Source: Octopus sinensis (lineage: Eukaryota). Taken from it: a stretch of DNA of 64,000 bases. Under the pieces are notes generated by a model that did no database searches, had not been told where the DNA came from, and was given only the letters and a program-made list of their open reading frames with translations. Below, piece after piece: positions 1-62,798 of this stretch (positions are counted from its first letter, which is position 1; every line of letters begins with the position of its first letter). The position numbers and the translations under genes are program-made. The stretch covers positions 52,700,001-52,764,000 of the forward strand of contig NC_043014.1 in the NCBI RefSeq assembly GCF_006345805.1, read 5' to 3'.

Positions 1-1727
1 GTTTTAGCATTGGTTTCAGAGCCAAATCCAAAACAAAGCTCATAACATTTTCTGAAGAACTCTTTGCTACAGTCAGGTTCTGTTTCTGTGAAATGCTTTC
101 CTAAATTTACATAAATTTGTTTCATTAGCTTTACATCAACTTCATGGGGCTTAACTTCTGAAAACCTAAGACAAAGAAAAGCTTTAAAATATTGCTTATT
201 TTTACAAAGTTTTCGTAACTTTCGTGATAATTCACTTTTATCACAATCCACGAGAAGTTTATTATAAAGTTCTTCATCATCACGGAGTTCCTCTACTGAC
301 TCAATTAATTCCAACAGTTTTTCATTATACTCAATATACCCATGCTTATACACATCAGTCATAATATCCTTTATTCCCCAAATGTCTTTCAGCTTCTTCT
401 GGAAAGGAAGAAATTCTATAGCAGATTTAATAGCAAGGAAGAACCTATCTGTTCCATCGTCTCTAAATTCTCGTTTCAACTCTTCATCATTTTCTTCTTC
501 TGCTAGTATGAAATATAATCTTCCATACAAAATGTTAAAACTAATGTCTTGTATTTTAATATTTGTTTTAAATTGTTCACAACACTCCTGGGCATTTTCG
601 TATTCTTTCAAAGCCAAATATAACAAAATCAAATCGTAGAGAACAGCTCCATTTTCTGGAGAAAGTTTAAGAGCTTCTTTAAAGTGATATTCTATTTTGC
701 CAATGAATTCATTCCTTTCCAATTCAGGAATAGTTCTAGGATATTTAATAAGTTTTCCAAGTGTATTTTCTTCCACAGAAAACTCCTTCTTTGCAGTGAA
801 ACATGTGAATTCTGGAATATGTATTTTTTGATAAGTTAATCCAAGATGATGATGAGAAAATGCTGTTGCATTTATTTCGATTGCTTTTACAAACAATTCT
901 TTTGCTTTATCAAACTTATATAAAGTCTTATAAAAGTTAGCACACTTTTCCAAAACAAAACGGTCATCAGGGGCAAAATGAAGAGCTCTTTGAACATATT
1001 TTTCACTGAATTCCTGATTCTTATGACTATTACATTTCCTTGAAGGTCTCACTTTAAACAAAGCTAATAATGCTAACGTTTTCCCCATTAGGATCTTGTC
1101 AATACAGCGAGGAAAAGCACATCGTATTTTCTCTAAGTACTGTACTGCCTCTGTACTAATTGTGTTTTTTTTATCTTCATCAGAGATCTTTCTTAAACAA
1201 CGATACTGTAACAAAGCTACACCAAATAGACATGAATAATTGCCCGGACAAAAATTGGAAGCCTCTTTGTAAAGTTTGATAGCCCTCTCATAATCATTGA
1301 ATGATATTCGACTTAAACAATAAGCAACATTCATTTTACCTTCTGCTTCTATCTGTTGGAAATCTTCTCTTTTTTCAAGATTGTTAAGATAAACCATAAC
1401 CTCTTTTAACTTATTCATATTTTCATTGTACAGATGAATGAATGCAAGATTGGTTAATGCCAAGAGGTTGTCTGGATTAGTTTCTTGAACTTCATTGGCT
1501 AATCTTTCAGCTTCAATATTCTTATTTAGCTCCCACTGAATAAACACCAAGGTATTCTTGTGGCGAATCTCATCTTCTAAACCAGACACAGTATCGTTAC
1601 TTAATGAATTTTCCAGTTTTTTGTAAAGAGACAACCAATGATCTTTGGTGTAGTGAAAATATTCTCCCATTAAATTCGGAAATCTCTGAATTTTTTCTCT
1701 GTACAATTCTCTTCTGCTTTCGTCATC
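1..1727 (-). CDS. Copy A, large exon 2 of IFIT-like TPR-TIR gene; runs off the window start, so the TIR part is outside the window
   Basis: Colinear with 27505-29231 (offset 27504) with no indels or stops seen by eye. Acceptor ...ttttctttcag|GATGAC at 1728/1727. Absent from the ORF track, presumably because its stop is outside the window. Confidence 0.9.
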
Positions 1728-9789: not shown

Positions 9790-10482
9790 CTTATAGACCC
9801 AACGAGGCCTAACTAGGAAATGGAGAGATCCAATTTTCCAGTAAGCAGCACATGAAGTGGATGCGTTTAGAAAACACTTCTTTACAGCTAGTTAATGTGC
9901 CAGGTTTCTTATAGTCCTTAAGAATTTTGGCTCTCTCTGCAACGACCACTTCCATTAATATACAGGCCCCAGATGATTGATTAATTTCCACCTGATGTCA
10001 CATGGCGTCCCTTGTTCTTTGAGGTGCCAATGACGTGACAAACCGTCTTTCTGGGACTCTGATGGTGGTTAAGAAAACATTGCTTGAACAAAGTACTAGC
10101 AGAACCAATATACTATTCACACCCTTGGTAATATATGGCATGGGTCTGGTCATCCCATCAGTGTCAAAGATAAATATTTGGTCATCTTCTGAGGTGGCAA
10201 AACTGGGAAAGGGGGATACCTCCTCCAAGCTGCTGGTCCTGAATAGGTCATTATTTCTAGGTGTGGTGTTTGTACTGGTGGTAACATACATTGTGGGCCT
10301 CGAGTTCTGAGCGTTTTCTCACGTCTGCGACATAGATATTTTAAATTTTGTATTTATGTAGAGTCTGACGAGCTGTCCACAAGGCTTTGCTTTGTGGATG
10401 CAAAACCTTGCGTAAGTCTATGTCCAAGATATAAAATTTCTGCTGTAACAATTACTGCTCTATTCTTTAAAGTGTGCTTCTT

Positions 10483-10534
<52 letters not shown>

Positions 10535-10760
10535 TAACTATATAATCAATAAAAACATATATCAGAAAAGAAGCACATTCTAAAGAATGGAGCAGTAATT
10601 ATGACGACAAATATTTTAATTTTAGACAAAGAGTTACCAAAGGCTGCTTATCCACAAAGCCAAAGCCTTGTGGACAGCTCATCAGACTAGACAAAGGCAA
10701 AAAACATTTAACTTTCTACGTGGCGGACGTTAAGGAAAAGCTCAGAAATCGAGATTTAAG
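9790..10760 (-). mobile_element. Penelope-like GIY-YIG remnant with inverted pseudo-LTR pair (also ~37290-38290 and ~59760-60985)
   Basis: KYIGSASTLFKQCFLNHQS, WHLKEQG..IRWK and ERAKIL..KEVFSKC-H across frames; ~190-bp degenerate inverted repeat (10300-10490 vs 10555-10755) around (TA)n. Confidence 0.8.
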
Positions 10761-10903: not shown

Positions 10904-11576
10904 CCCAATCAGACAAACGGGGATCTCTAATTTTCCAGTTGTTTACACTTGAAGTGGACACATTTAAAGAAAACTTATTCTAAATAAATGTGTGTAAAGT
11001 GGATGGATTCTCTTCTCTTCCTTGTTGTTGACTTTGCTTTTGTCAAGTGTCAGATATTTTTTCGTCTTCCTCGGCAATTCTAATGAGAATTTTATGACCA
11101 GCTCCGATAGTAAACTTTCGGGAACTTTATTCATTCATGTTTGTTTTTTCTTGGGGAGTTTCTGTCTACTAATTACTTCGATAATCTCAACAGACCAAAG
11201 GTTTCGTGCGTTCGAATGCGCAAAGGATGTGGATTGGTTATTTTGACATTTCAAACTTTTCTATGGCACTAATCCTGTTCGAAACACACGATTATTTCTT
11301 CCCACATACTTACACGCACCACATGTCTAGACATGCAAGTGTTATGCACAAAGATGCATACAAATGCCAAATCGGCACAATTTCCAGGTAGAATATTTTA
11401 TCTGTCATTGCTTCGCAGCTGTTTTGATGGCGTGTTTTATGTGTTTCTTTCTTGTTTTCATCTGCCACGCACACTTTGATATCCAAGACCGACTTTCATT
11501 CTGTTCACAGCTTCCGTCACCGACACACACACACACACACACAGTCATTCACACACGTACACAGATATACATATAT

Positions 11577-11836: not shown

Positions 11837-11887
11837 AAGTAGAATTCCATCCAATTTTTCAATAATTTCCTCGATTTCTTCAGCCAT
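11837..11887 (-). CDS. Copy A first coding exon, MAEEIEEIIEKLDGILL
   Basis: Minus strand reads cagaaaATGGCT...CTACTT|GTAAGT: good start context, consensus donor, phase 0 matching the phase-0 acceptor at 1727. Confidence 0.75.
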
Positions 11888-18229: not shown

Positions 18230-19330
18230 GGCGTGCACGTAGTCTCTCTAATGCTTTGACGGCCTAACCTTCAGCAAACTCGAATGCTTGATCAAGGTCA
18301 GACTCTCTCCAGAATCCCACAACCAGGCCGCTTTGCTCAAATTGCTTGGGGGTCTAGGTCTGCACAAGTGCTTGTCTCTATCTCTTCTCTGTTTTCTTTC
18401 CTCCACCCACATTTGATCCCCTTTAGTAAGCAACATACTCTCCTCTCTAACATGGACTAGTTCCTACAGGGAGATGGATAAAGCTTTGTTGCAATGGAGA
18501 GAATTAGGTTTCTCAGTTCTTGTTACAGTTGATGATAGACAGAAACAGAGAGTATGGCGCAACCTGCACTCGGGTGCTACTTTTTAAACTCTCTCCTTGA
18601 TCAATCTAATCAATTTTCAAGGTGTCACCTACTTTCTGCTACTGCAAAATTTCCAGGGGACTTGATTGATGCTCTGTCTGTGGCCAACATTGGAGATCTA
18701 TCCAGTCTAGATGAGCTCCACATCTCCATCACACTCAGAATGGGAGCTGCTGTCTGTAGGGGACAGAGATGTCATTGTGGTAGGTTCCTCAATTTCACAA
18801 GTCTTCACAGTCTGTCTTGCCATGTAAATGCTGGCCATTTTGCACATCACACCATGCTAAACTTAATCATTCAGTGGGTCCTAGCTTGGGTTACTATCCC
18901 ATTAGTTCTAGAGCTGGCTGGATTATCCAGAAGTGATGAGAAAAGTCCAAATGGTCTTACTCTCTGTCCCTGGGTAAAATGTAGGTGTCTCAATTGGGAC
19001 GCCATAGTCTGACTCCTTTGCTTCCTCCCACATCCTGGATGCTGCAGTAAATGGGACGATCACTGCTTCCATAGCTGAATGGAAGAAAATCCTTAAGTGT
19101 AGCGACCTATCGGTGAACTGTCTCTTCCAGCTTGTAGTGTTGGAGACATTTGGAGGGTCTGGGCTGCTAATGGCAAAGTTCTTGTCATCGTTCGCAGCTT
19201 GCCTTACCAAGGTATCAGATGATGCCTGTGAGGGTGCTTGGCTGTTCCAACGCCTTATCCTCGCCATCGCCTGTGGTAATGCTGCAAGTATGTTGGCTCG
19301 CTTCAATAGGTTCCTTTGAACCTTGTGGTG
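18230..19330 (+). mobile_element. CRE-clade non-LTR retrotransposon 3' remnant (also ~45111-46211)
   Basis: LHISITLRMGAAVC..CHCG..HSLSC, LELAGLSRSDEKSPNGLT, LNWDA, VVLETFG, WLFQRLILAIACGNAASML. Confidence 0.8.
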
Positions 19331-19599
19331 TGAGACCAATTGAAGCACTTGGCATTGCATTGGTGTTTTTCTTCTTGTTTTCTCTCTTTTTTGTTTTTCT
19401 TTTGTAAAATATATTCCTTTTCACTGAATTATTGCAAAAGTGTAACAAACAGAATATATATATTTCCAGATATTTCTTCCTTTCTATTGATATGTATATA
19501 GACCTGCTTTTTCAAGTCCCTGGATATGTGTTATTTATTTATAAGCAATTAAACTGAAGTTGCATTAACTAAACAAAACGTCTGCATCTGGGTGACTGT

Positions 19600-25176: not shown

Positions 25177-26249
25177 TATATAGATAGATAGATAGATATG
25201 CACATATAGGTACAGGACATCACAAAACATAAACAACATGAAATACAAAGGCAAGCCTGGTATGCGAACAATGAAACAAACAAATGGAAGACAAGATAAC
25301 TAACATACAGAACGACCCTTCATCAGTTGTTGGGTGTTTATCTCCACTCCATATTTCGAGCAATTCAGAATACTATGTGTCTTCGTTGTTTCATTTCGTT
25401 TGTTGTATGTCCAGTTTTTGTTACCAAATTTCACCTTCAGCAAAAACCAAATTTTATTTCGGTTTCCAGGAGCAACTCTTTCTCGAAGAAACATATTGTC
25501 ATGAATTGCTTGAAATATATGTATTATTATTATTATATATATTGGCATTCTTTAAATTATTTCTAGACTCAGCTTTTTATTCGGTTGCTACATTTAGAAT
25601 TCTGCAATCATGCACTGTATAGACATTTATGCTGCATTTCAGGATTTTTAGTATAAACGATTGCATATCTACAATTTTCTTCATTTCAAGGAATATACTA
25701 CCAACCTCTGCCAGCACTTTATCTGGAGAATGGATTTTCGAGTATTTCCTTTGAAATAGTCTCAGTTTTGTTGTGAATTTGACAGTATTATGAGGACATC
25801 ATCGCTGGGGAAAATAATCTAGGCAATTGCAAACAAATGTCTTCCAACGGTTAAGCCTGATCTCTTCTGTTCTTTGGAATATTCATTGGCTCTACGCCCT
25901 TAATTTTTTACAAATTTATCACGTTTGTAATTTACCCCTGGATGTCTTTTTTAATCCATTTACAACTCCCAAGGCCAACACTATTTTTTCACTCTGGTAC
26001 AGCAATTTCTTTTGGCATTTAAGTTCTTTTGGTGTCTTTAATAACTTTGAGGTTTTTACTACTTTCACAATCGTAGCACCCTTGCTATAACTCATGAGGA
26101 CAACTGGGGATAAGTCTGATATAGAAGTTTCAAACGATGTCCCCAGAACAAAAACTAGTCCCCTCTATGGAAACCTGCAGAATGGTTAACCGTTCATTGC
26201 ATGCAGGTATGTAAATATTGGAAAGGTACTGAGGTAAGGGTGCATCGGT

Positions 26250-27000
26250 AGTAGAAACAAGATTTCTGTCAGTGAGGAAATTAAAAAAAACCATTCACCA
26301 TGTTTCTGACAATATGGTGGTCACAAATTTCATGGAATATTGTTGTGTGGCCATCTTTGTCAAGTCCAAATACATCCCTTCTACTTTTGATTGGTAAAGT
26401 AGCTGTTTTCACATCCAATTCTAATGTGGCAGTATTTGTTCTTGGACAGAATCTATATTGGGTTTCACACAAGTTATTTTACTCTTGGAACAGAATCAAT
26501 TTGTGTTTGATGCTGAATTCTGTGATTTAACTGGTAGATGAAGTCAAAGATGCATGTCTATAATGTTTTGTGTTTGTCCTGCATCCTCATTTATGGCAAG
26601 AATATACAACAGCTTTTTTATTGCTAATGGGAATTTTAATGTTCTCCAGAAGATTTTGGAAAGAAACTAAAGGACTTTGGTTAGAGGATTTTTACATATT
26701 TTTAGGAGAATTGTTGGGAAGCAATCAGGGTCCGGTGCTGAGTTTATATGTATTTTGTCTGAAACAGTTATTCCATCGATTTCTTCTACGTCAACGTAAG
26801 GCCATGCTATTGAAAGTCTTTGTTGGCTTAGTTGTGTACCAGGAAAATGGTGAAGATATTAGAAGAGTCAGATATGCCATTCAGTTCTTTATTCTTTTGA
26901 AATTTAGCTGTATTAACATTATCAAGACATGTCACTGATGTTCAACTTCATCAGAGACACAGAAACCACCACAATAACAGCAGTAACTATCAGGTGGGAC
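26250..27000 (-). mobile_element. Old CR1-group LINE RT fragment just 3' of the gene stop (also ~53072-53822)
   Basis: Across frames: NSAPDPDCFPTILLKICKNPLTKVL, KAVVYSCHK.G..HYRHASLTS, LFQE*NNLCETQYRF, resembling SAPGPD..PIHKGG..NYRPISLTS..QHGFR. Confidence 0.65.
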
Positions 27001-27056
27001 ACTGCCAAAATGCAGCTGACACAGGAAAATGTTCTTCACAATTATGAAAAAACAAA

Positions 27057-29231
27057 CTAAGATAGACTGCAAAGAAAATTAAAAATATTCACAATGTCAT
27101 CTCTGTGTCCACTTTGGCATTTCAACTGAGGAAAACTTTCTAAATGTTTTGGAATTTCTATATCTTCATGGTTCCTGATCATAAAAATTTGACCAATTTT
27201 AGGTTGTCGATCTTCCATGATTTGTTTGGCATATTCAGTGTGGGTTAAAAACTCTGGTGATATAGTCTTTGAATGTTCTAAATAAATTCCAATATTGCAA
27301 CTGTTTTCTAATATGGTACGAAGGTTTACAGTTTTATATTTTCCCAATATATAGTCACGATTACCAAATGTAACTTTTAACCCAAAGTATTTGTCTAGAT
27401 TCATTCCAATGTTTTCAGCCAGTTCTTCAGAGTTTGGGGATGTTAAAATATAGATATCATAATGAAAGTTAGTTACGATGTCATTCTTTGAACATGCTAA
27501 CCCCGTTTTAGCATTGGTTTCAGAGCCAAATCCAAAACAAAGCTCATAACATTTTCTGAAGAACTCTTTGCTACAGTCAGGTTCTGTTTCTGTGAAATGC
27601 TTTCCTAAATTTACATAAATTTGTTTCATTAGCTTTACATCAACTTCATGGGGCTTAACTTCTGAAAACCTAAGACAAAGAAAAGCTTTAAAATATTGCT
27701 TATTTTTACAAAGGCTTCGTAACTTTCGTGATAATTCACTTTTATCACAATCCACGAGAAGTTTATTATAAAGTTCTTTATTATCACGGAGTTCCTCTAC
27801 TGACTCAATTAATTCCAACAGTTTTTCATTATACTCAATATACCCATGCTCATACACATCAGTCATAATATCCTTTATTCCCCAAATGTCTTTCAGCTTC
27901 TTCTGGAAAGGAAGAAATTCTATAGCAGATTTAATAGCAAGGAAGAACCTATCTGTTCCCTCGTCTCTAAATTCTCTTTTTAAGTCTTCATCATTTTCTT
28001 CGTCTGCTAGTATGAAATATAATCTTCCATACAAAATATGAAAACTAACGTCTCGTATTTTAATATTTGTTTTAAATTGTTCACAACACTCCTGGGCATT
28101 TTCGTATTCTTTCAAAGCCAAATATAACAAAATCAAATCGTAGAGAACAGCTGCATTTTCTGGAGAAAGTTTAAGAGCTTCTTTAAAGTGATATTCTATT
28201 TTGCCAATGAATTCATTCCTTTCCAATTCAGGAATAGTTCTAGGACATTTAATAAGTTTTCCAAGTGTATTTTCTTCCACAGAAAACTCCTTCTTTGCAG
28301 TGAAACATGTGAATTCTGGAATATGTATTTTTTGATAAGTTAATCCAAGATGATGATGAGAAAATGCTGTTGCATTTATTTCGATTGCTTTTACAAACAA
28401 TTCTTTTGCTTTATTAAACTTATATAAAGTCTTATAAAATTTAGCACACTTTTCCAAAACAAAACGGTCATCAGGGGAAAAATGAAGAGCTCTTTGAACA
28501 TATTTTTCACTGAATTCCTGATTCTTCAGAATATTACATTTCCTTGAAGGTCTCAATTTAAACAAAGCTAATAATGCTAACGTTTTCCCCATTAGGATCT
28601 TGTCAATACAGCGAGGAAAAGCACATCGTATTTTCTCTAAGTACTGTACTGCCTCTGTACTAATTTTGCGTTTTTTTTCTTCATCAGAGATCTTTCTTAA
28701 ACAACGATACTGTAACAAAGCTACACCAAATAGACATGAATAATTGTCTGGACAAACATTAGAAGCCTCTTTGTAAAGTAGGATAGCCCTCTCATAATCA
28801 TTGAATGATATTCTTCTTAAACAATAAGCAACATTCATTTTACCTTCTGCTTCTATCTGTTGGAAATCTTCTCTTTTTTCAAGATTGTTAAGATAAACCA
28901 TAACCTCTTTTAACTTATTCATATTTTTATTGTACAGATGAATGAATGCAAGATTGGTTAATGCCAAGAGGTTGTCTGGATTAGTTTCTCGAACTTCATT
29001 GGCTAATCTTTCAGCTTCAATATTCTTATTTAGCTCCCACTGAACAAACACCAAGGTATTCTTGTGGTGAATCTCATCTTCTAAACCAGACACAGTATCG
29101 TTACTTAATGAATTTTCCAGTTTTTTGTAAAGAGACAACCAATGATCTTTGGTGTAGTGAAAATATTCTCCCATTAAATTCGGAAATCTCTGAATTTTTT
29201 CTCTGTACAATTCTCTACTGCTTTCGTCATG
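27057..29231 (-). CDS. Copy B exon 2 (724 aa + stop): IFIT/TTC22-like TPR repeats plus C-terminal TIR-like domain (~27057-27467)
   Basis: IFIT-like motifs: NLLALTNLAFI, DYERAILLYKEA..CPDN..FGVALLQYR, AKFY, FSHHHLGLTY, YHFKEAL, FHILYGR. TIR-like motifs: FHYDIYIL, FGLKVTFGNRDYILG, ILENS. Polypyrimidine tract and CAG acceptor at 29232. Confidence 0.9.
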   Translation of the reverse strand, partial: HDESSRELYREKIQRFPNLMGEYFHYTKDHWLSLYKKLENSLSNDTVSGLEDEIHHKNTLVFVQWELNKNIEAERLANEVRETNPDNLLALTNLAFIHLYNKNMNKLKEVMVYLNNLEKREDFQQIEAEGKMNVAYCLRRISFNDYERAILLYKEASNVCPDNYSCLFGVALLQYRCLRKISDEEKKRKISTEAVQYLEKIRCAFPRCIDKILMGKTLALLALFKLRPSRKCNILKNQEFSEKYVQRALHFSPDDRFVLEKCAKFYKTLYKFNKAKELFVKAIEINATAFSHHHLGLTYQKIHIPEFTCFTAKKEFSVEENTLGKLIKCPRTIPELERNEFIGKIEYHFKEALKLSPENAAVLYDLILLYLALKEYENAQECCEQFKTNIKIRDVSFHILYGRLYFILADEENDEDLKREFRDEGTDRFFLAIKSAIEFLPFQKKLKDIWGIKDIMTDVYEHGYIEYNEKLLELIESVEELRDNKELYNKLLVDCDKSELSRKLRSLCKNKQYFKAFLCLRFSEVKPHEVDVKLMKQIYVNLGKHFTETEPDCSKEFFRKCYELCFGFGSETNAKTGLACSKNDIVTNFHYDIYILTSPNSEELAENIGMNLDKYFGLKVTFGNRDYILGKYKTVNLRTILENSCNIGIYLEHSKTISPEFLTHTEYAKQIMEDRQPKIGQIFMIRNHEDIEIPKHLESFPQLKCQSGHRDDIVNIFNFLCSLS

Positions 29232-31154
29232 CTGAAAGAAAAACAAAATAGTGAATATGTATAAAATGTGTATTAAAAAAAGCATCACCATTATCGTTGG
29301 CAAGATTCCAGGTTACTGAGACAAGGCTAAACCCTCCAAGTTAGATAAGGCTGATGCAGTGGAAGTTCATTTGGGGTTCCAGAGTTTGATGCCTTTCAAA
29401 AAAAAATACTGTCACCAGAAATGGAATTCCAGATGATAGCAGTTTTGTGGAAGAAGGATTGGTTTAGTACTCACTAACGTCTGTGTGTGTGCATGCATGA
29501 TTGCTACATGGCTCTGTATGTATGTAGGTCAGGGGGTCATTGAGTAGCGGAGTCTTGTAGAGGGTCAGCAACTATTACCATCATTTTTCATCAAACTGAT
29601 GCAACACTAGAAATACTTTCAATGGGATTCCAGAAAACCTTCTCTCATGTTTAAGAGACATGTTTTCTTTTTGGTCTTTCATCCAAAAATGTTATAGCTC
29701 CTCTCCCTTCTCCTCTTGCCATTCCTCATTACACTCTTGTTTTCAGTTTTCATATAATTCAAGGCTCTCACTTTACCACTACTACTACTACTGCCACCAC
29801 CACTGAGACCTCTGCTCTTCCATGCTTGTTATTTCTATCCATGCCCACCTGACTTACACATCTCTCCTCCTCCTCCTCACTTCATCATACTCTCTCTCTA
29901 CAAAGAAACTTATCTATTTCTTACAATACTTACCAATCTATACATCAAAATCAAAATTTTTTCAGTGGTCCTTAAAATATTATTGTGAATTCCAAATTTA
30001 CTATTTTATTACGTGGACCCCCCAAAATTCTTCTATGGACTCTCAGGGACCACATGGACCCCAGTTGAGAAGCACTACTCTAGACCATCATACAAAATCT
30101 TTACTTAGAAAGCATAGCCCCAGTCAAAGAGTCTGCCAAAGCAATGGATTAAACATAATTAGAACGAATATGAAGGATTCTCCCTGAAATTATTTTATGA
30201 TCCTTCAGATTAACCATCAGTTTTTTTAGTTTCTTCAAATGTCCACCAGGAAATAGATGTCTGACCAAAAACATTGTATAGAAATGTAATGTTAAAACTA
30301 ATCTACACACGTTCACTTATGTAGATACCACTTCTTCCAACTTTAAATTGTAATCGTCTTCATACATTTAGAAAGTGGGAATAAAACGATAACAACTCCC
30401 ACAAAAGTCTGGGAGTTAAATGCTAAACCTTTTGTCAGTGATAGACATGACTGCAATCTTTACTGTTTGGAAATGTGGGAAATCTTAAAATCATTTAAAT
30501 TAAAATCTAGTCTAGATTGGCTGCATTAAGAATCAAATGCCTACGTTTTATCTTTATAATTTCCTTATACTTTAAACCAGTTCTATAAACCAGTTTTGAG
30601 CACTATGTACATATCTATAATACTACAATATAGACTTTAATTAATATTAATAAGATTCATGGATTATATTCAAGTAGTCAAGCATATTTTAATACTATTA
30701 ATACTAATAACTGATCCTATTTAAGCTACTTTCGTGCACCCTTAGTCCTGACACCAAATACTGATGATTGTAATTTGATATGATTTATAACTTAATAACT
30801 TCATTCAATTTCCTACTAATCTTAGGTGGTCTCTTTATAATGTTTGCTTTTTCCTCCCTAGTTATGCCCTTTCTAATTCTTTATAATTTGTTATAATCCT
30901 TAAAATTCATTTACCATTTTTTAACGTTTACGGTCCCCATAATTTTTCATTATTAGTGACCTGACCCATCTTCTTGCAGGATTTCAATTCAGTTGCTTTA
31001 TTCTCCACAATTCTATGACAAAACTGGTTAATAGAAATGTTGGGAGGGTAACCAATGGGTCTCAATCCTCAGTGAGATTGGCAGACTGGGCGGAGGAGAC
31101 TGTTACTGAGGTCCCACGGTGAGGAAGGCAGTACCAGTAGGCATTGTGGAGTGC

Positions 31155-32475
31155 CTAGAACATGACGACACGCTATGGAACAAAGGAGCCAAATCAAACT
31201 GGGAATTCCAGGGGAATTTCCCTGCTTTCCGTTGATGGAAAAATCCTGGCCCACATCTTTTTCAATATTCTCATCAACAACATCTCCAAGAGCGACTCGC
31301 CTGAAGCCCAGTGTGGCTTCTGCCCAGGCCACAGCACCATGGACATGGTGTTTGCTGTGCGTCAAGTTAAGGAGAAATGTATTGAACAACGGATGGATTT
31401 ATACTCTGTGTTCATAGACCTGACCAAAGCTTTTTGGATCATGCTAACCAAGCATGGCTGCCCACACAAGTTCACCACACTGATAAGACTCTTTCATGGC
31501 AATATGAGCAGTGAAGTTTTTTTGCAATGGTGACCACACCAACTCTTGACATTGGGGCACGAAACAGGGCTGAGTGCTCACCCCCATCTTGTTCAATTTG
31601 TTCTTCACACAGGTCCTGCTTTACACAGTGAAAGACCTAAACCTGGGCATATACATCAAAATATCATTCAGACTGGTCTGTTTTTCCTCCTCCACTCACT
31701 CTCTGCTTGAACCAAGACACTGGAAAAGCTCATCACAGAAGCCCTATTTACAAATGACAGTGTACTTAGGGCACACAAGGAAAATCACCTGCAGACCATT
31801 GTTGATCACTTTGCAGAAGCATGAAAGCTTTTTGGACAGATCATCAGCCTTGACAAAACGGAGACCCTAGTCCAAGCAGCACCAAACACATTTCACTCCA
31901 GCCAAACACCACCATTGAGGGAGTCCAGCTTAAGTGTGTGGAGAGTTTCAGGTACCTTGGTAGCACAGTCTCAGCCGATGGATCATTGAACAGTGAAACA
32001 TTATCCAGAATCCGCAATGCCAGTTAAGAAGCACTTGGAAGACTGAAAATGAAAGTCGTCCAGCAGAAAGGCATCAGACGATCGACAAAGCTCAAGATCT
32101 ACAAGGCTGTAGTCATTTCTACACAATTCTATAGAGGGCAAGCATGGGCCCCCTGGCATCAGCACATCAAACAGCTGGAACAGTTTCACACAAGAGCATT
32201 CACTGGTAGGACAGTGTGACAAACCAACAAAAGTTTGTTCAACAAGCATTCAGTTAATGTTGCTGAAGGCTCAGTTATACTGGACTGACCATGTCATCAG
32301 AATGGCTGACAACTGTGTACTCAGACAGCTGTTCTACAGTGATTTCATGCAGGGCTCATACAAACCAGGAAGGCCTAAACTGAGGTACCAAGGCACCCTG
32401 AAAAGTAACCTAATTATCTTGAGACTAGCAAGAGAAAGACATCATAGGACAGTATCCAGCTCAATTCAGTCAATA
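31155..32475 (+). mobile_element. RTE-clade LINE remnant (unit 2 copy)
   Basis: Track translations identical to 3647-4969. Confidence 0.9.
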
Positions 32476-34113
32476 GACTACTGATGTGATATCTGTGTGC
32501 TTCCAGTTTGGGATTGTGAAGTCACATGTGCTCTCATCACTGTGAACACAGACTTTGTCATCATTAGATACCTATGGACTGCCTTTCATAAATTATTTTG
32601 TTTTCCTTTCCTCTGAAATTTTGCAGAGACTTTCACTATTCCTTGCATTCTTTTTGCTAAAGTTATTTTCCCTGTGTAATAATTAGCTGGATTGGCCTTA
32701 ATTAAAGTTAATAGTTTGTTAGTTCTCCAATAATTAACCAGAGCACTTTAATCATGAGGAATTAATTAAAAGAATAAGTCAAACTGGAATTTATTAACCA
32801 TATCATTCTGGTGCCCTAAACAATCTCACTCAGTAAAGGACTAATTTTGTCTTTTTGAGAACATCAGCAACTGGCTTTGAAAATGTTACGAGAGGGTCAA
32901 ACGTCATGCTTTTGGTACCTGATATATGTTGGGCTATAAGCCTGATGTGACCAGTACCAGCTTTTAGGAGTAATGCTGCAACATTTAATGACACCTTTAG
33001 AACTGATCTGCCATTTAGCTATTCTATAATTGACAACTTCTTTCTATTCTTCACTCGTGGAATTGACTGATTGTAGTACCATCCACTTTAAGGTAAGATC
33101 AACAACAAAAGTGTTCCATCGTGTGAGAGCTAAATATCACTTAATGTACACAGGTAAATGTACATTCTAGTTTTATATCTGTATACCAAAATACATTAAA
33201 TAATACACACACACACACACACAACAACAACTTTACCCATAGAAAGAGTGGCAAAATTACTTGAGTTTATGTGAAACTGGATCAACGTGTGGTGTTGTCC
33301 CAATTTCAGCCAGCCTCCAAGTGTGCACATCTGGAAGCCATTACACAAAAGTATATGAGATGTGAATATCGATCTATTTAACCATGTGACTTCCATATGA
33401 TTCTGACCATTTCTCAATCTTCTTTATTTAGTATTAATTCCAGTATTCAAGACATTACGTGTGCATGATTGCAGTAATATGTATGTTATGCATTGTACAA
33501 GAGAAATGTACATTCCCAACTGAAAGTAAAGAAAGAAAGCTAGCTCATCAGATCAGCAGAACATCATGGTTACAGCATAGTTCTATCAGCAGTTCAACTC
33601 TAAATACACACACGGAACTCATTCATTTAGAATTCTTACAAAAACTGGTATTGCAAATAGAGATGCTATAGAAACAATTCTAACTTTTAATTAGAGACAG
33701 GTAAAAGAATTGTCTCTGTCTTCTTCTTTTCATTGGTATATATATATATATATCATCATCATCATCATCATTTAGCGTCCGCTTTCCATGCTAGCATGGG
33801 TTGGACGGTTCAACTGGGGTCTGTGAAGCCAGGAGGCTGCATCAGGCCCAGTCTGATCTGGCAGTGTTTCTACGGCTGGATGCCCTTCCTAACGCCAACC
33901 ACTCCGTGAGTGTGGTATATATATATATATATATATATATTGCCCTCTAAAGAAACTGTCCAACATTTGAGTCGGTGTTTGAGGTATAAGGACACAGCTG
34001 TGTGCCGGAAGCCAGCTGAAAAACATGTTTTCCTGGGGATAAAAAAAGGTAGTAATATTGTCCTAATTGGGACTGCCAATTTACGTTGACAAATAGATTT
34101 CACTCCCTCCCTC

Positions 34114-34186
<73 letters not shown>

Positions 34187-34461
34187 ATATGGAACAAATA
34201 ATTCCCCAGGAATTTTCACACTGGTGACTGCCATGATTCGGTGCAAAACAAATCATGATGGGTTGGGGCTCTATATCATGGTAACGTATGCTGAGGAAGG
34301 TGAGACTATAATGCCAGTCTAGAAACCAGTCCATGTGAGTTCAAATACTTGAATGCATGCTGAGATTGTCTTAGCCCGTTTGCCTTTGGATGGTTGATTT
34401 CTGTAGTTGTTATCAGCAGGTAGACATACTTAGTATGTCCTTTGATTAATTTTAATACATG

Positions 34462-34537
<76 letters not shown>

Positions 34538-35896
34538 TACAAATATGGAGATAAAGGTTTTCAAGCACAGAATAATGCATGAAAAGTATCGTATCCTTAT
34601 ATTGCAGAAAAATTTGTCAGCAGCCAGCCATGAGACTTGAACACTCATCTCTGTGATTACCAGTCAAGCACTTTATCTTTAAGCTAAGATGCCCAGTGAC
34701 AAATTTTTCTGCAATTTTTAAACTTATAAACTTAGCTTTTTTATAGACGCTGCATGTGAAATTCAGATTACATTATATGTAAACAAAGTTTGCTTTATTG
34801 GAAGTGTTGAGATGTATTGAGACAGACACATATGGAGAGAAATATTTTCAAGTGCAGAATAAAGCATGAACAGTGTTAATAGCATAATATCGCTGTTCAA
34901 GCATTATTCTTAAAGGTAAAGCAAATAACTTTCACCCCTCTCTGTTCCCTTAATATAAAACTAACATTGGTTAAGGATTCCTATCATTCCTAGACAAACA
35001 CTTTTCAGCCACTCACAGATACAGGAAAATATTTAATAGGCTTTCTGTGAAATTATCATATAGCCCCAACTGCAACTGTCACGACCCAGGATCCTCTCCA
35101 CTTAACCAACGCTGTGCGACTAAACCTATCTTATATGAGGCAGAAGTTTCTGCAACCCGAAACAATAATACAACTGATGAGAAGACGTCTACTGGATTAT
35201 GTGAAAGAATTTAGAAATCACTCATGCCAGTCATATAGCCTCCTCCTCCTCCTGACATAGGGACAAAATGAAAACTACAAAGTTCGCTAGCTACGTATGG
35301 ACTTTGAAAGATATTGAAACACTTCATGTGATTAAATGGAAAGTAATCCATACTTGATGTGAAGGGATCGAATGAATGTAGACTTTGTTTGGCTGAAAGA
35401 GCACAGATCCTGTTCTGATCTAAGATCCTAACTCTCTATTGAACTCCAGGTCAGGAATTTTCACTGCTTGCATGCATATGTATAAATACATTTTAAAGAA
35501 TTGGAAAATTCTGCCTATTCCTGACCGACTTGATATCTTTCCAGCCTTATCCTTTAAGGTCAAAGGAGGAGGTTTGCTCTTTTACCTTTTTACTTTTTAT
35601 TTTGGACATTTTAGTTTCAGTTTTTCTCTTTTCCTTTTTCTCTCGTTTACTGTCTGTGTTTTCTATAAGCTGCCTTCTCAGTTTATTTTGCATTTCTTCT
35701 ATCATTCAATTTCTTTAGTTCGTTTGTGCCTGAAGGATATGTTTGAGTTCTCTCCACATATGAAACTATTAGTAGGGTTTTAATGCATCTATTGTGACCT
35801 TTAAATAAATAATATTTATCTCTCACCAGATGAAGTACTTTTTTTTGTTGAATTTTCTTCACGGATCAGTACATTATATATATATATATATATATA

Positions 35897-37166
35897 CGAG
35901 GGGCGTTCAATAAGTAATGCCCCTGACCCACTTGCAGTTGTTTGATCTAGCTGAAATTTTGCATGAGCACTTATTTATACCTCTATAGATTAAGTGGCGA
36001 ATTACAGCTCTGAACTAATTGTGGTTTCTGATTTACAGGTGTTTGAACTGAGTCAAGTGTGAAATGGAGCCTGTTGAGTGTCGAGCAGTAATCTGGTTTT
36101 TGTATTTGAAAGGACGCACACCACGGGAGACTTTTGATGAAATGGAAGTAACTTATGGTGATGATGCCCCATCATATGACCTTGTAAAACGCTGGCATTG
36201 TGAATTCAAACATAGTCGGAACTCTGTGGAAACAGCTCCCAGATCTGGTCGCCCCCTTCTGCCGTTGATGAGACGTCTGTCCGTCAAGTTGAGGCTGCCA
36301 TTTTGGAAGGCCAATGCATAACTATTCGCCAAATAGCCCATAAGGTCAAGATTAGTACCGGGTCTGTGGAAACTATCATTCATGACCATTTGCATATGCA
36401 AAAGGTGTCTGCCAGATGGATTTCCAGGTTGCTCACATCTTTCCAGAAGCAAGAATGCGTTGAGTGCTCGAGGATGAATTTGGAGATGTGCCAAGAAGAT
36501 GAGTCAAAATTTTTCAAAAGACTGATCACACAGGATAAAACCTGGGTCCATCACTATGACCCATAGACCAAAGCCCAGTCAATGCAGTGAAAGCACCGTG
36601 ACTCACCTCCTCCAAAGAAGGCAAGGGTGCAGCCCTCCGCTGACAAGGTTATGCTCACAGTCTTCTGGGACCAGGACGGAGTAGTGATGACAGATTTCCT
36701 GGCAAAGGGTACCACAATTACAGGAGCCTATTATGCTTCACTTTTGAGGAAATTAAGAGAAGCTATCAAAATCAAGAGGCGGAGCTAGATCAGCAAAGGC
36801 ATCCTCCTCCTGCAGGACAACGCTCCGGTCCACAACTCGCGTGTCGCCAGATCAGAAGCACAGGCGTGCAGCTATGAACTCCTCCCCTTGCACCCTCTGA
36901 TTTTCACCTCTTCCCAGCCATGAAGTTGATTTTGAAAGGAAAGCGTTTCCCAGATGATGCAGCCTTGATTTCTGAAGTCACGTCATGGTTGGAGGACCAT
37001 GCTGGGGTCTTCTACAAAAACGGTCTCCAGAGCTGTATCAAACGATGGGAGAAATGCATAACTCTGGGTAGTTCCTATGTAGGAAAAGACTAATAACTGT
37101 GCCAAGTTTTGTTGCTCTACTGCTATGGGAAGTGGGTCAGGGGCATTACTTATTGAACGCCCCTCG
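35897..37166 (+). mobile_element. Same mariner in unit 2
   Basis: Same TIRs and length; only two substitutions noticed versus 8397-9666. Confidence 0.95.
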
Positions 37167-37202
<36 letters not shown>

Positions 37203-38004
37203 TAATTACAACAAATATATTACATCTTGGACACAGAGTCTTCAATAACGTTTTTTGTTACTCCCCTGAATCAGAGGGTAAAATAAACCCTTATAGACCC
37301 AACGAGGCCTAACTAGGAAATGGAGAGATCCAATTTTCCAGTAAGCAGCACATGAAGTGGATGCGTTTAGAAAACACTTCTTTACAGCTAGTTAATGTGC
37401 CAGGTTTCTTATAGTCCTTAAGAATTTTGGCTCTCTCTGCAACGACCACTTCCATTAATATACAGGCCCCAGATGATTGATTAATTTCCACCTGATGTCA
37501 CATGGCGTCCCTTGTTCTTTGAGGTGCCAATGACGTGACAAACCGTCTTTCTGGGACTCTGATGGTGGTTAAGAAAACATTGCTTGAACAAAGTACTAGC
37601 AGAACCAATATATTTACACACATGGGGTGTAGTACTATTCACACCCTTGGTAATATATGGCATGGGTCTGGTCATCCCATCAGTGTCAAAGATAAATATT
37701 TGGTCATCTTCTGAGGTGGCAAAACTGGGAAAGGGGGATACCTCCTCCAAGCTGCTGGTCCTGAATAGGTCATTATTTCTAGGTGTGGTGTTTGTACTGG
37801 TGGTAACATACATTGTGGGCCTCGAGTTCTGAGCGTTTTCTCACGTCTGCGACATAGATATTTTAAATTTTGTATTTATGTAGAGTCTGACGAGCTGTCC
37901 ACAAGGCTTTGCTTTGTGGATGCAAAACCTTGCGTAAGTCTATGTCCAAGATATAAAATTTCTGCTGTAACAATTACTGCTCTATTCTTTAAAGTGTGCT
38001 TCTT

Positions 38005-38062
<58 letters not shown>

Positions 38063-38351
38063 TAACTATATAATCAATAAAAACATATATCAGAAAAGAA
38101 GCACATTCTAAAGAATGGAGCAGTAATTATGACGACAAATATTTTAATTTTAGACAAAGAGTTACCAAAGGCTGCTTATCCACAAAGCCAAAGCCTTGTG
38201 GACAGCTCATCAGACTAGACAAAGGCAAAAAACATTTAACTTTCTACGTGGCGGACGTTAAGGAAAAGCTCAGAAATCGAGATTTAAGTCTTAACATCTC
38301 AAAATGGTAATGAGGAAGGGTTGTCTCCCCTGAAGCAGAGGATTAAAAACA

Positions 38352-38471
38352 CCCTTACAGACCCGGAAAAGCCCTTAAAGACCCGAAAACGCCCTTACAG
38401 ACTCGAAAACGCCCTTACAGACTCGAAAACGCCCTTACAGACCCGAAAACACCCTTACAGACCCGAAAAGG
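38352..38471. repeat. 20-bp minisatellite, 6 units (copy B intron)
   Basis: Same unit as at 10824. Confidence 0.95.
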
Positions 38472-39165
38472 CCCAATCAGACAAACGGGGATCTCTAATT
38501 TTCCAGTTGTTTACACTTGAAGTGGACACATTTAAAGAAAACTTATTCTAAATAAATGTGTGTAAAGTGGATGGATTCTCTTCTCTTCCTTGTTGTTGAC
38601 TTTGCTTTTGTCAAGTGTCAGATATTTTTTCGTCTTCCTCGGCAATTCTAATGAGAATTTTATGACCAGCTCCGATAGTAAACTTTCGGGAACTTTATTC
38701 ATTCATGTTTGTTTTTTCTTGGTTAAAGTCAGTTAGGTGCAGTTGTTTCCTTCTTGGGGAGTTTCTGTCTACTAATTACTTCGATAATCTCAACAGACCA
38801 AAGGTTTCGTGCGTTCGAATGCGCAAAGGATGTGGATTGGTTATTTTGACATTTCAAACTTTTCTATGGCACTAATCCTGTTAGAAACACACGATTATTT
38901 CTTCCCACATACTTACACGCACCACATGTCTAGACATGCAAGTGTTATGCACAAAGATGCATACAAATGCCAAATCGGCACAATTTCCAGGTAGAATATT
39001 TTATCTGTCATTGCTTCGCAGCTGTTTTGATGGCGTGTTTTATGTGTTTCTTTCTTGTTTTCATCTGCCACGCACACTTTGATATCCAAGACCGACTTTC
39101 ATTCTGTTCACAGCTTCCGTCACCGACACACACACACACACACAGTCATTCACACACGTACACAG

Positions 39166-39234
<69 letters not shown>

Positions 39235-39435
39235 AATCTGTTTTATGCTTTATATGTTTTTGTTAGTATTGTTATATTTAAAGAATTATTGAAATAAACT
39301 TGTTATACATACATATCTATACACACATACATAGCTGCCTACTTACATACATACACACGTACATATACATACCTACACACTAAACAACACAGAGTTAATA
39401 TTTGTTCATGTTTGTAAATATGTTGATATACTTAC

Positions 39436-39486
39436 AAGTAGAATTCCATCAAATTTTTCAATAATTTCCTCGATTTCTTCAGCCAT
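39436..39486 (-). CDS. Copy B first coding exon, MAEEIEEIIEKFDGILL
   Basis: ATG at 39486-39484, GTAAGT donor at 39435-39430, phase 0; one L/F difference from A and C. Confidence 0.75.
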
Positions 39487-53878: not shown

Positions 53879-56053
53879 CTAAGATAGACTGCAAAGAAAA
53901 TTAAAAATATTCACAATGTCATCTCTGTGTCCACTTTGGCATTTCAACTGAGGAAAACTTTCTAAATGTTTTGGAATTTCTATATCTTCATGGTTCCTGA
54001 TCATAAAAATTTGACCAATGTTAGGTTGTCGATCTTCCATGATTTGTTTGGCATATTCAGTGTGGGTTAAAAACTCTGGTGATATAGTCTTTGAATGTTC
54101 TAAATAAATTCCAATATTGCAACTGTTTTCTAATATGGTACGAAGGTTTACAGTTTTATATTTTCCCAATATATAGTCACGATTACCAAATGTAACTTTT
54201 AACCCAAAGTATTTGTCTAGATTCATTCCAATGTTTTCAGCCAGTTCTTCAGAGTTTGGGGATGTTAAAATATAGATATCATAATGAAAGTTAGTTACGA
54301 TGTCATTCTTTGAACATGCTAACCCCGTTTTAGCATTGGTTTCAGAGCCAAATCCAAAACAAAGCTCATAACATTTTCTGAAGAACTCTTTGCTACAGTC
54401 AGGTTCTGTTTCTGTGAAATGCTTTCCTAAATTTACATAAATTTGTTTCATTAGCTTTACATCAACTTCATGGGGCTTAACTTCTGAAAACCTAAGACAA
54501 AGAAAAGCTTTAAAATATTGCTTATTTTTACAAAGTTTTCGTAACTTTCGTGATAATTCACTTTTATCACAATCCACGAGAAGTTTATTATAAAGTTCTT
54601 TATTATCACGGAGTTCCTCTACTGACTCAATTAATTCCAACAGTTTTTCATTATACTCAATATACCCATGCTCATACACATCAGTCATAATATCCTTTAT
54701 TCCCCAAATGTCTTTCAGCTTCTTCTGGAAAGGAAGAAATTCTATAGCAGATTTAATAGCAAGGAAGAACCTATCTGTTCCATCGTCTCTAAATTCTCGT
54801 TTCAACTCTTCATCATTTTCTTCTTCTGCTAGTATGAAATATAATCTTCCATACAAAATGTGAAAACTAACGTCTTGTATTTTAATATTTGTTTTAAATT
54901 GTTCACAACACTCCTGGGCATTTTCGTATTCTTTCAAAGCCAAATATAACAAAATCAAATCGTAGAGAACAGCTGCATTTTCTGGAGAAAGTTTAAGAGC
55001 TTCTTTAAAGTGATATTCTATTTTGCCAATGAATTCATTCCTTTCCAATTCAGGAATAGTTCTAGGATATTTAATAAGTTTTCCAAGTATATTTTCTTTC
55101 AGAGAAAACTTCTTCTTTGCAGTGAAATATGTGAATCCTGGAATATGTATTTTTAGATAAGTTATTCCAAGATGATGATGAGAAAATGCTGTTGCATTTA
55201 TTTCGATTGCTTTTACAAACAATTCTTTTGCTTTATCAAACTTATATAAAGTCTTATAAAAGTTAGCACACTTTTCCAAAACAAAACGGTCATCAGGGGC
55301 AAAATGAAGAGCTCTTTGAACATATTTTTCACTGAATTCCTGATTCTTCAGAATATTACATTTCCTTGAAGGTTCCAATTTAAACAAAGCTAATAATGCT
55401 AACGTTTGCCCCATTAGGATCTTGTCAATACAGCGAGGAAAAGCACATCGTATTTTCTCTAAGTACTGTACTGCCTCTGTACTAATTTTGCGTTTTTTTT
55501 CTTCATCAGAGATCTTTCTTAAACAACGATACTGTAACAAAGCTACACCAAATAGACATGAATAATTGCCCGGACAAACACTGGAAGCCTCTTTGTAAAG
55601 TTTGATAGCCCTCTCATAATCATTGAATGATATTCTTCTTAAACAATAAGCAACATTCATTTTACCTTCTGCTTCTATCTGTTGGAAATCTTCTCTTTTT
55701 TCAAGATTGTTAAGATAAACCATAACCTCTTTTAACTTATTTATATTTTCATTGTACAGATGAATGAATGCAAGATTGGTTAATGCTAAGAGGTTGTCTG
55801 GATTAGTTTCTCGAACTTCATTGGCTAATCTTTCAGCTTCAATATTCTTATTTAGCTCCCACTGAATAAACACCAAGGTATTCTTGTGGTGAATCTCATC
55901 TTCTAAACCAGACACAGTATCATTACTTAATGAATTTTCCAGTTTTTTGTAAAGAGACAACCAATGATCTTTGGTGTAGTGAAAATATTCTCCCATTAAA
56001 TTCGGAAATCTCTGAATTTTTTCTCTGTACAATTCTCTTCTGCTTTCGTCATC
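53879..56053 (-). CDS. Copy C exon 2 (724 aa + stop): IFIT-like TPR plus TIR-like domain (~53879-54289)
   Basis: Open ORF with 28 aa differences from copy B by hand count; acceptor ttttctttcag|GAT at 56054/56053. Confidence 0.9.
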   Translation of the reverse strand, partial: DDESRRELYREKIQRFPNLMGEYFHYTKDHWLSLYKKLENSLSNDTVSGLEDEIHHKNTLVFIQWELNKNIEAERLANEVRETNPDNLLALTNLAFIHLYNENINKLKEVMVYLNNLEKREDFQQIEAEGKMNVAYCLRRISFNDYERAIKLYKEASSVCPGNYSCLFGVALLQYRCLRKISDEEKKRKISTEAVQYLEKIRCAFPRCIDKILMGQTLALLALFKLEPSRKCNILKNQEFSEKYVQRALHFAPDDRFVLEKCANFYKTLYKFDKAKELFVKAIEINATAFSHHHLGITYLKIHIPGFTYFTAKKKFSLKENILGKLIKYPRTIPELERNEFIGKIEYHFKEALKLSPENAAVLYDLILLYLALKEYENAQECCEQFKTNIKIQDVSFHILYGRLYFILAEEENDEELKREFRDDGTDRFFLAIKSAIEFLPFQKKLKDIWGIKDIMTDVYEHGYIEYNEKLLELIESVEELRDNKELYNKLLVDCDKSELSRKLRKLCKNKQYFKAFLCLRFSEVKPHEVDVKLMKQIYVNLGKHFTETEPDCSKEFFRKCYELCFGFGSETNAKTGLACSKNDIVTNFHYDIYILTSPNSEELAENIGMNLDKYFGLKVTFGNRDYILGKYKTVNLRTILENSCNIGIYLEHSKTISPEFLTHTEYAKQIMEDRQPNIGQIFMIRNHEDIEIPKHLESFPQLKCQSGHRDDIVNIFNFLCSLS

Positions 56054-57810: not shown

Positions 57811-57846
<36 letters not shown>

Positions 57847-58340
57847 CCCTCTAAAGAAACTGTCCAACATTTGAGTCGGTGTTTGAGGTATAAGGACACA
57901 GCTGTGTGCCGGAAGCCAGCTGAAAAACATGTTTTCCGGGGGATAAAAAAAGGTAGTAATATTGTGCTAATTGGGACTGCCAATTTACAAATAGATTTTA
58001 CTCCCTCCCTCTTTCTCTCTCTCTCTCTCTCTCCTTCTCTCTCTCTCTCTTTCTCTATATATATATATATCAATATGGAACAAATAATTCCCCAGGAATT
58101 TTCACACTGGTGACTGCCATGATTCGGTGCAAAACAAATCATGATGGGTTGGGGCTCTATATCATGGTAACGTATGCTGAGGAAGGTGAGACTATAATGC
58201 CAGTCTAGAAACCAGTCCATGTGAGTTCAAATACTTGAATGCATGCTGAGATTGTCTTAGCCCGTTTGCCTTTGGATGGTTGATTTCTGTAGTTGTTATC
58301 AGCAGGTAGACATACTTAGTATGTCCTTTGATTAATTTTA

Positions 58341-58385
<45 letters not shown>

Positions 58386-59783: not shown

Positions 59784-59852
59784 ACACAGAGTTACCCAAG
59801 GTTTCGTATCCACAAAGGAAAGCATTGTGGACAGCTCCTCAGATTCTATATA
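59784..59852 (-). ncRNA. Type I hammerhead ribozyme with intact core (Penelope pseudo-LTR), copy C only
   Basis: Minus strand: tatatagaat CTGAGGA gctgTCCACAA-N9-TTGTGGAtac GAA ACC ttg GGT A actctgtgt. Helix I has one A.C mismatch and G-U pairs. Confidence 0.65.
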
Positions 59853-62747: not shown

Positions 62748-62798
62748 AAGTAGAATTCCATCCAATTTTTCAATAATTTCCTCGATTTCTTCAGCCAT
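62748..62798 (-). CDS. Copy C first coding exon, MAEEIEEIIEKLDGILL
   Basis: ATG at 62798-62796, GTAAGT donor at 62747-62742, phase 0. Confidence 0.75.

Follow-up and report, generated by a model that had tools for sequence, protein, structure and literature searches.

Old divergence in the IFIT-like clamp of a tandemly repeated Octopus gene family with homogenised flanks

The 64,000-nucleotide stretch of an Octopus chromosome (O. sinensis-type) analysed here, hereafter the window, comprises approximately 2.3 tandem units of about 27 kb, each of which carries one minus-strand gene with two coding exons. The gene encodes a protein of 741 residues, 17 codons of which are contributed by exon 1, in which an IFIT-like TPR clamp is followed by a helical linker and then by a C-terminal alpha/beta domain that is weakly TIR-like. 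Most of the clamp differs among the three copies in the window (A, B and C) far more than the DNA that surrounds it, and comparison with two further Octopus species indicates that this excess of exon over flank is mainly an island of old divergence set within young flanks. In this case, the exon that is more diverged than its introns marks the sole stretch of a tandem family under concerted evolution in which history is preserved. Because the TPR core alone retains that history, it is also the probable target of selection.

The divergence island and its history

The large exon of copy B, which is its second and last coding exon, occupies 27057..29231 on the minus strand as an open reading frame (ORF) of 724 codons plus stop, and its product corresponds to residues 18-741 of database protein P0001. 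Alignment of this exon with that of copy C reveals 37 substitutions in the 1764 nt of the TPR part at 27468-29231 (2.1%), as compared with 1 substitution in the 411 nt of the C-terminal part at 27057-27467 (0.24%) and 5 in the 1436 nt of the 3' flank at 25621-27056 (0.35%). A first-pass annotation of this DNA had counted these differences by hand, using the 3' flank as its neutral yardstick, and its figures (38 in the exon, 31 of them non-synonymous and 7 synonymous, 1 in 411 nt and 5 in 1.44 kb) are reproduced exactly by the alignment. The same is true of its estimate of about 16 private changes in copy A, as 16 codons of this copy are unlike both B and C. The roughly 5-fold excess that it reported holds relative to the 1.44 kb of adjacent sequence, which is the quietest available, but not for the unit as a whole. 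When the yardstick is extended to all cleanly aligned non-coding DNA of the 27-kb unit and compared with the TPR part by Fisher test, the excess is 3.3-fold for B-C (2.14% versus 0.65%, p=4e-8), 10.7-fold for A-B (2.38% versus 0.22% over 9.4 kb, p=2.5e-19) and 2.9-fold for A-C (1.97% versus 0.69%, p=2e-5), where DNA comparisons with copy A cover large-exon codons 1-575 and the upstream sequence within the window. In its other flanks B-C divergence is 0.9-1.05%.

Divergence is also not uniform along the unit, as scanning with 500-nt windows gives 28000-29000 as the sole cleanly aligned peak that is common to all three within-species pairs. Further peaks near 34000, 35500 and 40000 fall at gappy or deletion-edge stretches, and copies A and B have no differences at all over 30000-32500. 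The island proper extends in copy B over 27714..29231 (minus strand, codons 1-506), includes the IFIT-like TPR clamp with the first extension helices, and holds all 37 of the B-C differences in the TPR part. The first-pass annotation had confined the excess to the whole of the TPR part. It was correct in that the C-terminal part is quiet, but the island already ends at codon 506 (27714), and the last ~250 nt of the presumed TPR part, which encode the helical linker (27468..27713, minus strand, codons 507-588), are of low divergence as well. Beyond codon 506 the single B-C difference is at codon 678. Independently produced assemblies from other Octopus species contain both alleles of 18 of the 37 B-C differences and of 24 of the 41 A-B differences, so these differences are not consensus errors, a possibility that the annotation had raised against itself. 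The excess divergence of the TPR part is consequently confirmed as real and far beyond chance.

The age of this divergence was addressed with seven sequences from three species. Database proteins that match copies A, B and C derive from three genes on a single 55-Mb chromosome of the O. sinensis type, O. vulgaris has three matching genes (Ov1, Ov2 and Ov3) on chromosome OX597833.1, and O. bimaculoides has a single orthologue that is 84% identical. Sites that group the copies switch their allegiance at the island edges. In the quartet A, B, Ov3 and Ov1, the TPR core (codons 55-424, minus strand, 27960..29068 in copy B) contains 17 sites that support orthology across species (A with Ov3, B with Ov1) and 1 that supports grouping by species, while the 11.6 kb of intron and 5' region contains 0 and 38 such sites, respectively. 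Downstream of the gene, the quartet B, C, Ov1 and Ov2 likewise gives 0 orthology sites and 15 species sites. Positional orthologues do not exhibit an exon excess, as B and Ov1 differ by 1.04% in the TPR part and 0.79% in non-coding DNA (where A and B differ by 0.22%), and A and Ov3 by 0.81% and 0.98%. Relative to O. bimaculoides the divergence is similarly even, with 8.4% in the TPR part, 8.9% in the intron and 7.6% in the 3' flank. Synonymous sites within the TPR part are raised together with non-synonymous ones. For B-C the synonymous divergence (dS) of 0.021 equals the non-synonymous divergence (dN) of 0.021, and synonymous TPR divergence is 3-9 times the non-coding level (B-C 7/342 versus 0.65%, p=0.009; A-B p=2e-4). 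Taken together, the raised synonymous sites, the even orthologues and the switch in site allegiance indicate that the contrast between exon and flanks is mainly one of age and not of rate. The earlier impressions that synonymous sites are elevated and that patchy conversion among older paralogues is involved are both borne out, the latter by site grouping and divergence alike.

These site patterns place the triplication before the split of O. sinensis and O. vulgaris, and they indicate that the intron, 3' flank, linker and C-terminal domain have since been homogenised within each species by concerted evolution. Approximately 1.1-1.5 kb of the coding TPR clamp has largely escaped this process, leaving paralogue haplotypes that are common to both species and about twice as old as the split. 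Judged from the sites in the TPR core, three lineages are kept, namely A/Ov3, B/Ov1/Ov2 and C. Copy C alone retains the O. bimaculoides state at codons 44, 306, 309, 318 and 319, and it also has private changes of its own; it is the oldest TPR lineage. The island is furthermore a mosaic, since derived states are common to all three lineage pairings (4 sites for B-type with C, 2-3 for A-type with C and 5 for A-type with B-type).

Gene order and intron structure provide an additional view of this history. Copy C is without ~3.2 kb and ~1.3 kb of intron that correspond to 30697-33857 and 35897-37238 of copy B (C region 56727-59926), and both of these deletions are present in Ov2, so C and Ov2 are structural orthologues. 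Despite its C-type intron, the TPR part of Ov2 is B-type, with 13 differences from Ov1 and 36 from C, which indicates that a TPR conversion occurred in O. vulgaris. Additionally, no difference separates Ov1 from Ov3 past about codon 425.

Several features of the O. vulgaris genes are recorded here in their own right. In Ov3 (L003) the frame of the large exon is shifted by a single inserted A, at a position homologous to just after 27502, and the annotated product P0011 (600 aa) stops short of the C-terminal domain. The copy may genuinely be TPR-only or a pseudogene, or the extra base may be a homopolymer error of that assembly. At the extreme end of the OX597833.1 record, Ov1 and Ov3 lie in tandem with a spacing of 27 kb, and Ov2 is located ~250 kb from them in opposite orientation, reflecting either a real rearrangement or a chromosome-end assembly issue.

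Identity of the clamp, linker and C-terminal domain

Pfam recognizes only generic TPR families in the TPR part of the protein. A phmmer search of PDB sequences is more specific, returning human IFIT5 at E=1.8e-9 and IFIT1 at E ~1e-6, and the database proteins closest to it come from Octopus and bear the names IFIT5-like or IFIT1B-like. The AlphaFold2 (AF2) model of residues 20-450 has a per-residue confidence (pLDDT) of 75-95, and when the TPR model was compared with the PDB by Foldseek, the top 14 matches were all IFIT1 or IFIT5 (E ~1e-11), with target TM-scores of 0.62-0.67 and one at 0.56. Generic TPR proteins scored E-values ~1000-fold worse. By sequence and by predicted fold, the TPR part is therefore IFIT-like, and the model describes an IFIT-type clamp and not a generic TPR superhelix.

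Residues that line the RNA-binding tunnel have established roles in IFIT5 (K150, R186, R253, K257, R260, H287 and Q288; PMC3950709, PMC9677429), and a HMMER alignment allows several of them to be located in the octopus protein. K150 corresponds to R140, R186 to R176, R260 to K267 and H287 to H293, while R253, Y254 and Q288 are replaced by E, K and H, respectively; the N-terminal contacts E33, T37 and Q41 of IFIT5 are outside of the alignment. IFIT5 K257 forms a salt bridge with RNA phosphate and is needed for RNA binding (PMC3950709). It aligns to octopus codon 264, which is K in B, Ov1 and Ov2, N in A, C and Ov3, and T in O. bimaculoides. A cluster of variable codons (185-191) aligns to the loop that follows IFIT5 R186, which in primate IFIT1 contains the rapidly evolving residue 193 (PMC12543323). 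Codon 264 and the 185-191 cluster are suggestive of variation at a ligand surface. By analogy with IFIT1 and IFIT5, the TPR tunnel is a putative binding site for a non-self ligand such as RNA 5' ends.

The linker shares 39% identity with the C-terminal helices of an O. vulgaris IFIT1B-like protein (P0019). The C-terminal domain itself (27057..27467, minus strand, 137 codons plus stop) is conserved but isolated. An exhaustive phmmer search with the last 244 residues against 1.8 billion representative proteins had only two matches, the O. bimaculoides orthologue and an IFIT1B-like protein of O. vulgaris, the latter by its linker, and so provided no homologue of the domain outside Octopus. The domain has no match in Pfam even at E<=10, none in PADLOC or NCBIfam, and no TIR among PDB sequences at E<=10. 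Structure prediction adds little, as residues 514-741 have a pLDDT below 50 in the full-length AF2 model and the domain-only model is poor (pLDDT 51), although beta and alpha elements alternate in it as they would in a TIR. With this poor model no Foldseek match had an E-value below 0.06, and the 50 best included no TIR. Profile-profile alignment by hhalign against five Pfam-validated TIR domains did give a weak match (E=4.5e-4, probability 33%, 71 columns) that places YDIYILT on Box 1 and RDYILGK on RDFIPGK (Box 2, BB-loop). None of 300 column shuffles reached its score (23.7, as compared with 12.2 +/- 2.1 and a maximum of 19.4 for the shuffles). Four of the five TIR domains taken singly align in register with scores of 14.7-22.6, as compared with 8.5-13.1 for six decoy alpha/beta proteins. 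A Glu in THTEYAKQ falls approximately at the position of the alphaC glutamate of TIRs, although the hhalign alignment ends before it. The TIR label of the first-pass annotation is thus absent from Pfam, NCBIfam, PADLOC and PDB-sequence matches and survives as a weak profile-profile match above controls, on the basis of which we tentatively regard the domain as TIR-like.

Compared with O. bimaculoides, the C-terminal part has diverged by 3.4% and the TPR part by 8.4%, so the former evolves 2.4-fold slower. The earlier suggestion of a variable sensor with a conserved partner domain fits an IFIT-like TPR part joined to this slower C-terminal part. The domain may pass on a signal or act as an effector, which is likewise a putative role. 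The literature was searched for IFIT in Octopus or molluscs and for IFIT-TIR fusions, with nothing specific found, and the combination of an IFIT-like clamp with a conserved C-terminal alpha/beta domain is apparently an undescribed architecture.

Selection on the clamp and competing explanations

The reading frame within the island is clearly maintained. Simulation of 166 neutral substitutions gives a probability of 0.0006 that no premature stop would arise, and the exon contains 1 indel, which is in-frame, where ~21 are expected from the flanks. Pseudogene drift is ruled out by this simulation together with the indel deficit. Estimates of omega by the Nei-Gojobori (NG86) method are 0.8-1.0 relative to the outgroup and ~1.0-2.1 among copies, and the maximum-likelihood M0 estimate is 1.00. 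Site models, which the first-pass annotation had proposed, were fitted with our own implementation of the Goldman-Yang (GY94) codon model. They prefer M2a over M1a for the seven sequences, with twice the log-likelihood difference (2dl) at 38 and 13% of codons at omega ~7. The same preference is obtained with three-taxon star trees (2dl=17.6-24.7, p 1.5e-4 to 4e-6), whose topology cannot be misled by recombination. Overall the M2a class has an omega of 7-15, with ~45% of codons at omega ~0, and codons 507-724 contain no class of omega>1. Additionally, derived changes private to a lineage number 23 non-synonymous to 1 synonymous (p=0.038).

A number of observations weigh against selection for diversity. 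The class of omega>1 is lost once the 30 multi-hit codons (>=2 nucleotide differences) are masked, with the remainder at omega 0.83-0.94, although such masking removes the class partly by construction and so neither confirms nor refutes selection. Some of the multi-hit codons are adjacent double changes on a single branch (codons 227, 228, 241 and 506), a type of change that inflates codon-model tests, and others (codons 5, 55, 151, 159, 188, 189, 235, 264 and 318) were hit independently in different lineages. A contrast of the McDonald-Kreitman (MK) type is not significant (p=0.125), nor is the overall ratio of non-synonymous to synonymous changes among copies significantly above neutral (p=0.15). 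Omega is ~1 even at columns that do not vary among seven further IFIT-like proteins of Octopus, a result that resembles general relaxation more closely than selection on particular sites, and variable sites are not enriched in loops when helices and loops are compared. The island is itself not immune to conversion, as is evident from the B-type TPR part of Ov2 and from the identity of Ov1 and Ov3 past about codon 425. Finally, the data consist of only seven sequences from three species that are represented by assemblies alone. On balance, we rate diversifying selection on the TPR part as no more than probable.

Two further observations concern these codons. Splitting codons by their conservation in other IFIT-like proteins was tried as a means of separating a constrained from a selected set, but it gave no separation, with omega ~1 in both. 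The four adjacent double changes, at 27714-27715 (copy B, codon 506), at 28552-28553 in B coordinates (copy C, codon 227) and at Ov2 codons 228 and 241, lie on short terminal branches and are all radical (K>S, R>E, P>F and S>K). Each may have arisen as a multinucleotide mutation or in two selected steps.

The explanation that we consider probable is that old TPR lineages persist within homogenised flanks and that their escape is held by selection for differing ligand surfaces. Under this explanation the units would be homogenised by non-allelic gene conversion and/or unequal crossing-over, the escape of the TPR part would be maintained via selection for distinct ligand-binding surfaces among copies, and amino acids would be replaced recurrently at ~5-13% of codons, including the equivalent of IFIT5 K257. 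The tunnel would bind a non-self ligand while the C-terminal domain would signal or act as an effector. An alternative is neutral escape, in which constraint on the TPR part is relaxed and homogenisation has been avoided by chance or through the mismatches of the region itself, with no selection for diversity. Omega of ~1 throughout, conserved columns included, is what such relaxation would give, and the disappearance of the positively selected class without multi-hit codons, the non-significant MK-type test and the O. vulgaris conversions that did enter the island point in the same direction. We nonetheless hold neutral escape to be unlikely. The same 1.1-1.5 kb is spared in each of the two species and in every one of the three pairs, with >20 kb homogenised on both sides, the frame is strongly maintained, ~45% of codons are at omega ~0 and private derived changes stand at 23 non-synonymous to 1 synonymous. 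Sequence divergence of ~2% is, moreover, a weak barrier to gene conversion.

The remaining explanations dispute the age or the reality of the pattern. Simple positive selection would have the copies be recent, with the flanks giving their true age and adaptive substitutions alone driving the exon apart. The first-pass annotation had named this as one reading that fits no better than balancing selection or patchy conversion, and the 31 non-synonymous to 7 synonymous B-C changes and the M2a class of omega 7-15 agree with it. We regard it as very unlikely, as it does not account for synonymous TPR divergence 3-9 times that of non-coding DNA, for orthologue pairs that lack an exon excess, for the 17 paralogue-distinguishing sites in common with O. 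vulgaris or for the O. bimaculoides states that C retains. The strict grouping of flanks by species and the limitation of sampling to annotated copies speak for independent duplications in each species, with TPR variants imported by introgression or by conversion from unsampled older paralogues. This would require that duplications in parallel had yielded an identical 27-kb spacing and gene order (A corresponding to Ov3 and B to Ov1), for identical intron deletions in C and Ov2, and for parallel matching donors, whereas other IFIT-like genes are too distant at 50-56% protein identity; we give it, if anything, slightly less credence still. Tandem 27-kb units at ~99% identity are hard to polish and the comparison is between assemblies, so that mis-polished repeats, or haplotypes set out as tandem copies, might produce an artefact of assembly or consensus. 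At half of the differing sites both alleles also occur in other species whose genomes were assembled independently, kilobase-scale indels between units and the 27-kb tandem spacing recur in O. vulgaris, and the differences leave the frame open, which together reduce an artefact to a negligible prospect.

The rest of the gene and unit can be described briefly, with all gene features on the minus strand. Positions in the tandem units are in register such that 1, 27505 and 54327 correspond. The coding part of exon 1 is located at 39436..39486 in copy B (MAEEIEEIIEKFDGILL), at 62748..62798 in copy C and at 11837..11887 in copy A, followed in each by a GTAAGT donor. The copy B intron (29232..39435, 10.2 kb), which is homogenised with copy A, ends in the acceptor TTTCTTTCAG that precedes the large exon, which in copy B then opens with CAT. 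The first base of this exon (29231, right after the AG of the acceptor) is C in B, giving His, and G in A, C and all other copies, giving Asp. The copy C large exon, as defined by its translation, is at 53879..56053, and the first 575 codons of the copy A large exon are at 1..1727, with the remainder beyond the window start and the full protein represented by P0017. Other genes in the unit were considered as a cause of the pattern and ruled out, as there is no further long ORF. Overlapping ORFs of 145-152 aa occur on both strands of an intergenic, locally GC-richer (44%) stretch at 18554-19360 that may be a transposon remnant. The copy C intron contains at 61045-61794 a minisatellite of ~37 copies of a 20-nt unit resembling CCCTTACAGACCCGAAAAC, which is ~0.7 kb longer than in A (~10906-11141) or B (~38474-38742) and yields a spurious ORF of 259 aa at 61020-61799. 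All three introns also have a long imperfect palindrome of ~465 nt, ~77% similar to its own reverse complement, at 60516-60980 (C), 10299-10753 (A) and 37821-38281 (B).

Relation to known systems

The joining of clamp and C-terminal domain is confined to Octopus among 1.8 billion representative proteins and makes this protein a candidate nucleic-acid sensor-effector of invertebrate antiviral immunity. Possibly the more interesting lead is the fusion of an IFIT-like with a TIR-like part, which may be novel. In its strongest form, which we regard as possible but doubtful, the protein would be a genus-restricted fusion of an IFIT-type clamp for RNA 5' ends with a diverged TIR-like effector, of which three copies are kept distinct at RNA-contact positions by diversifying selection acting against conversion. 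If true, this would be a sensor and effector in one protein, unlike vertebrate IFITs, which are without an effector domain. It would also represent a small repertoire, encoded in the germline, of specificities for RNA recognition, and this in a cephalopod, a group for which no interferon system is known to have been described. Natural variants at a known RNA-contact position (codon 264) are available for comparison.

The pattern as a whole is of a known kind, that of concerted evolution with a selected or spared island of divergence in an immune-type gene family. The nearest parallel is mammalian IFIT1/IFIT1B, where recurrent gene conversion has left one part of the genes homogenised and another diverged, with an uneven pattern also at synonymous sites and with evenly diverged orthologues (Daugherty et al. 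2016, PMC4887208), and where IFIT1 evolves rapidly (PMC12543323). The octopus genes belong to the same family by sequence and predicted fold, and they exhibit neighbouring paralogues that are in part homogenised and in part diverged, unevenness that extends to synonymous sites, even orthologues, and signs of rapid amino-acid evolution that include the loop after R186/R187. Consequently, the mammalian combination of gene conversion and rapid evolution is extended to a cephalopod. The differences are also considerable. In the mammalian genes it is the 5' two-thirds of the coding sequence that is homogenised, with the 3' third ~62% identical, whereas in octopus the whole 27-kb unit is homogenised except for most of the TPR clamp, and the divergence there is only ~2%. 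The octopus protein also has an added helical linker and C-terminal alpha/beta domain, both of which are missing from vertebrate IFITs.

A peak of divergence in duplicates that undergo gene conversion was treated theoretically by Teshima and Innan (2008) and is exemplified by exon 5 of the human red and green opsins, where the peak between near-identical introns is taken to mean that selection restricts conversion at functional sites (PMC3924837). Like the opsins, the octopus genes are tandem duplicates ~24-27 kb apart with near-identical introns and a peak in one exon. The opsin peak is centred on two known spectral-tuning residues, while in octopus there are ~50 variable codons spread over 500 codons. 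The octopus protein also resembles immune proteins that unite a repeat sensor with an effector, such as plant TIR-NLRs and the proteins of conflict systems that link TPR or LRR sensors to TIR-type effectors (PMC8195603), in having a variable repeat solenoid and a conserved small alpha/beta domain and in the occurrence of tandem arrays, conversion and diversification. It differs from them in that it is without an NTPase switch module, its repeats are IFIT-type TPRs, and the TIR nature of its C-terminal domain is weakly supported.

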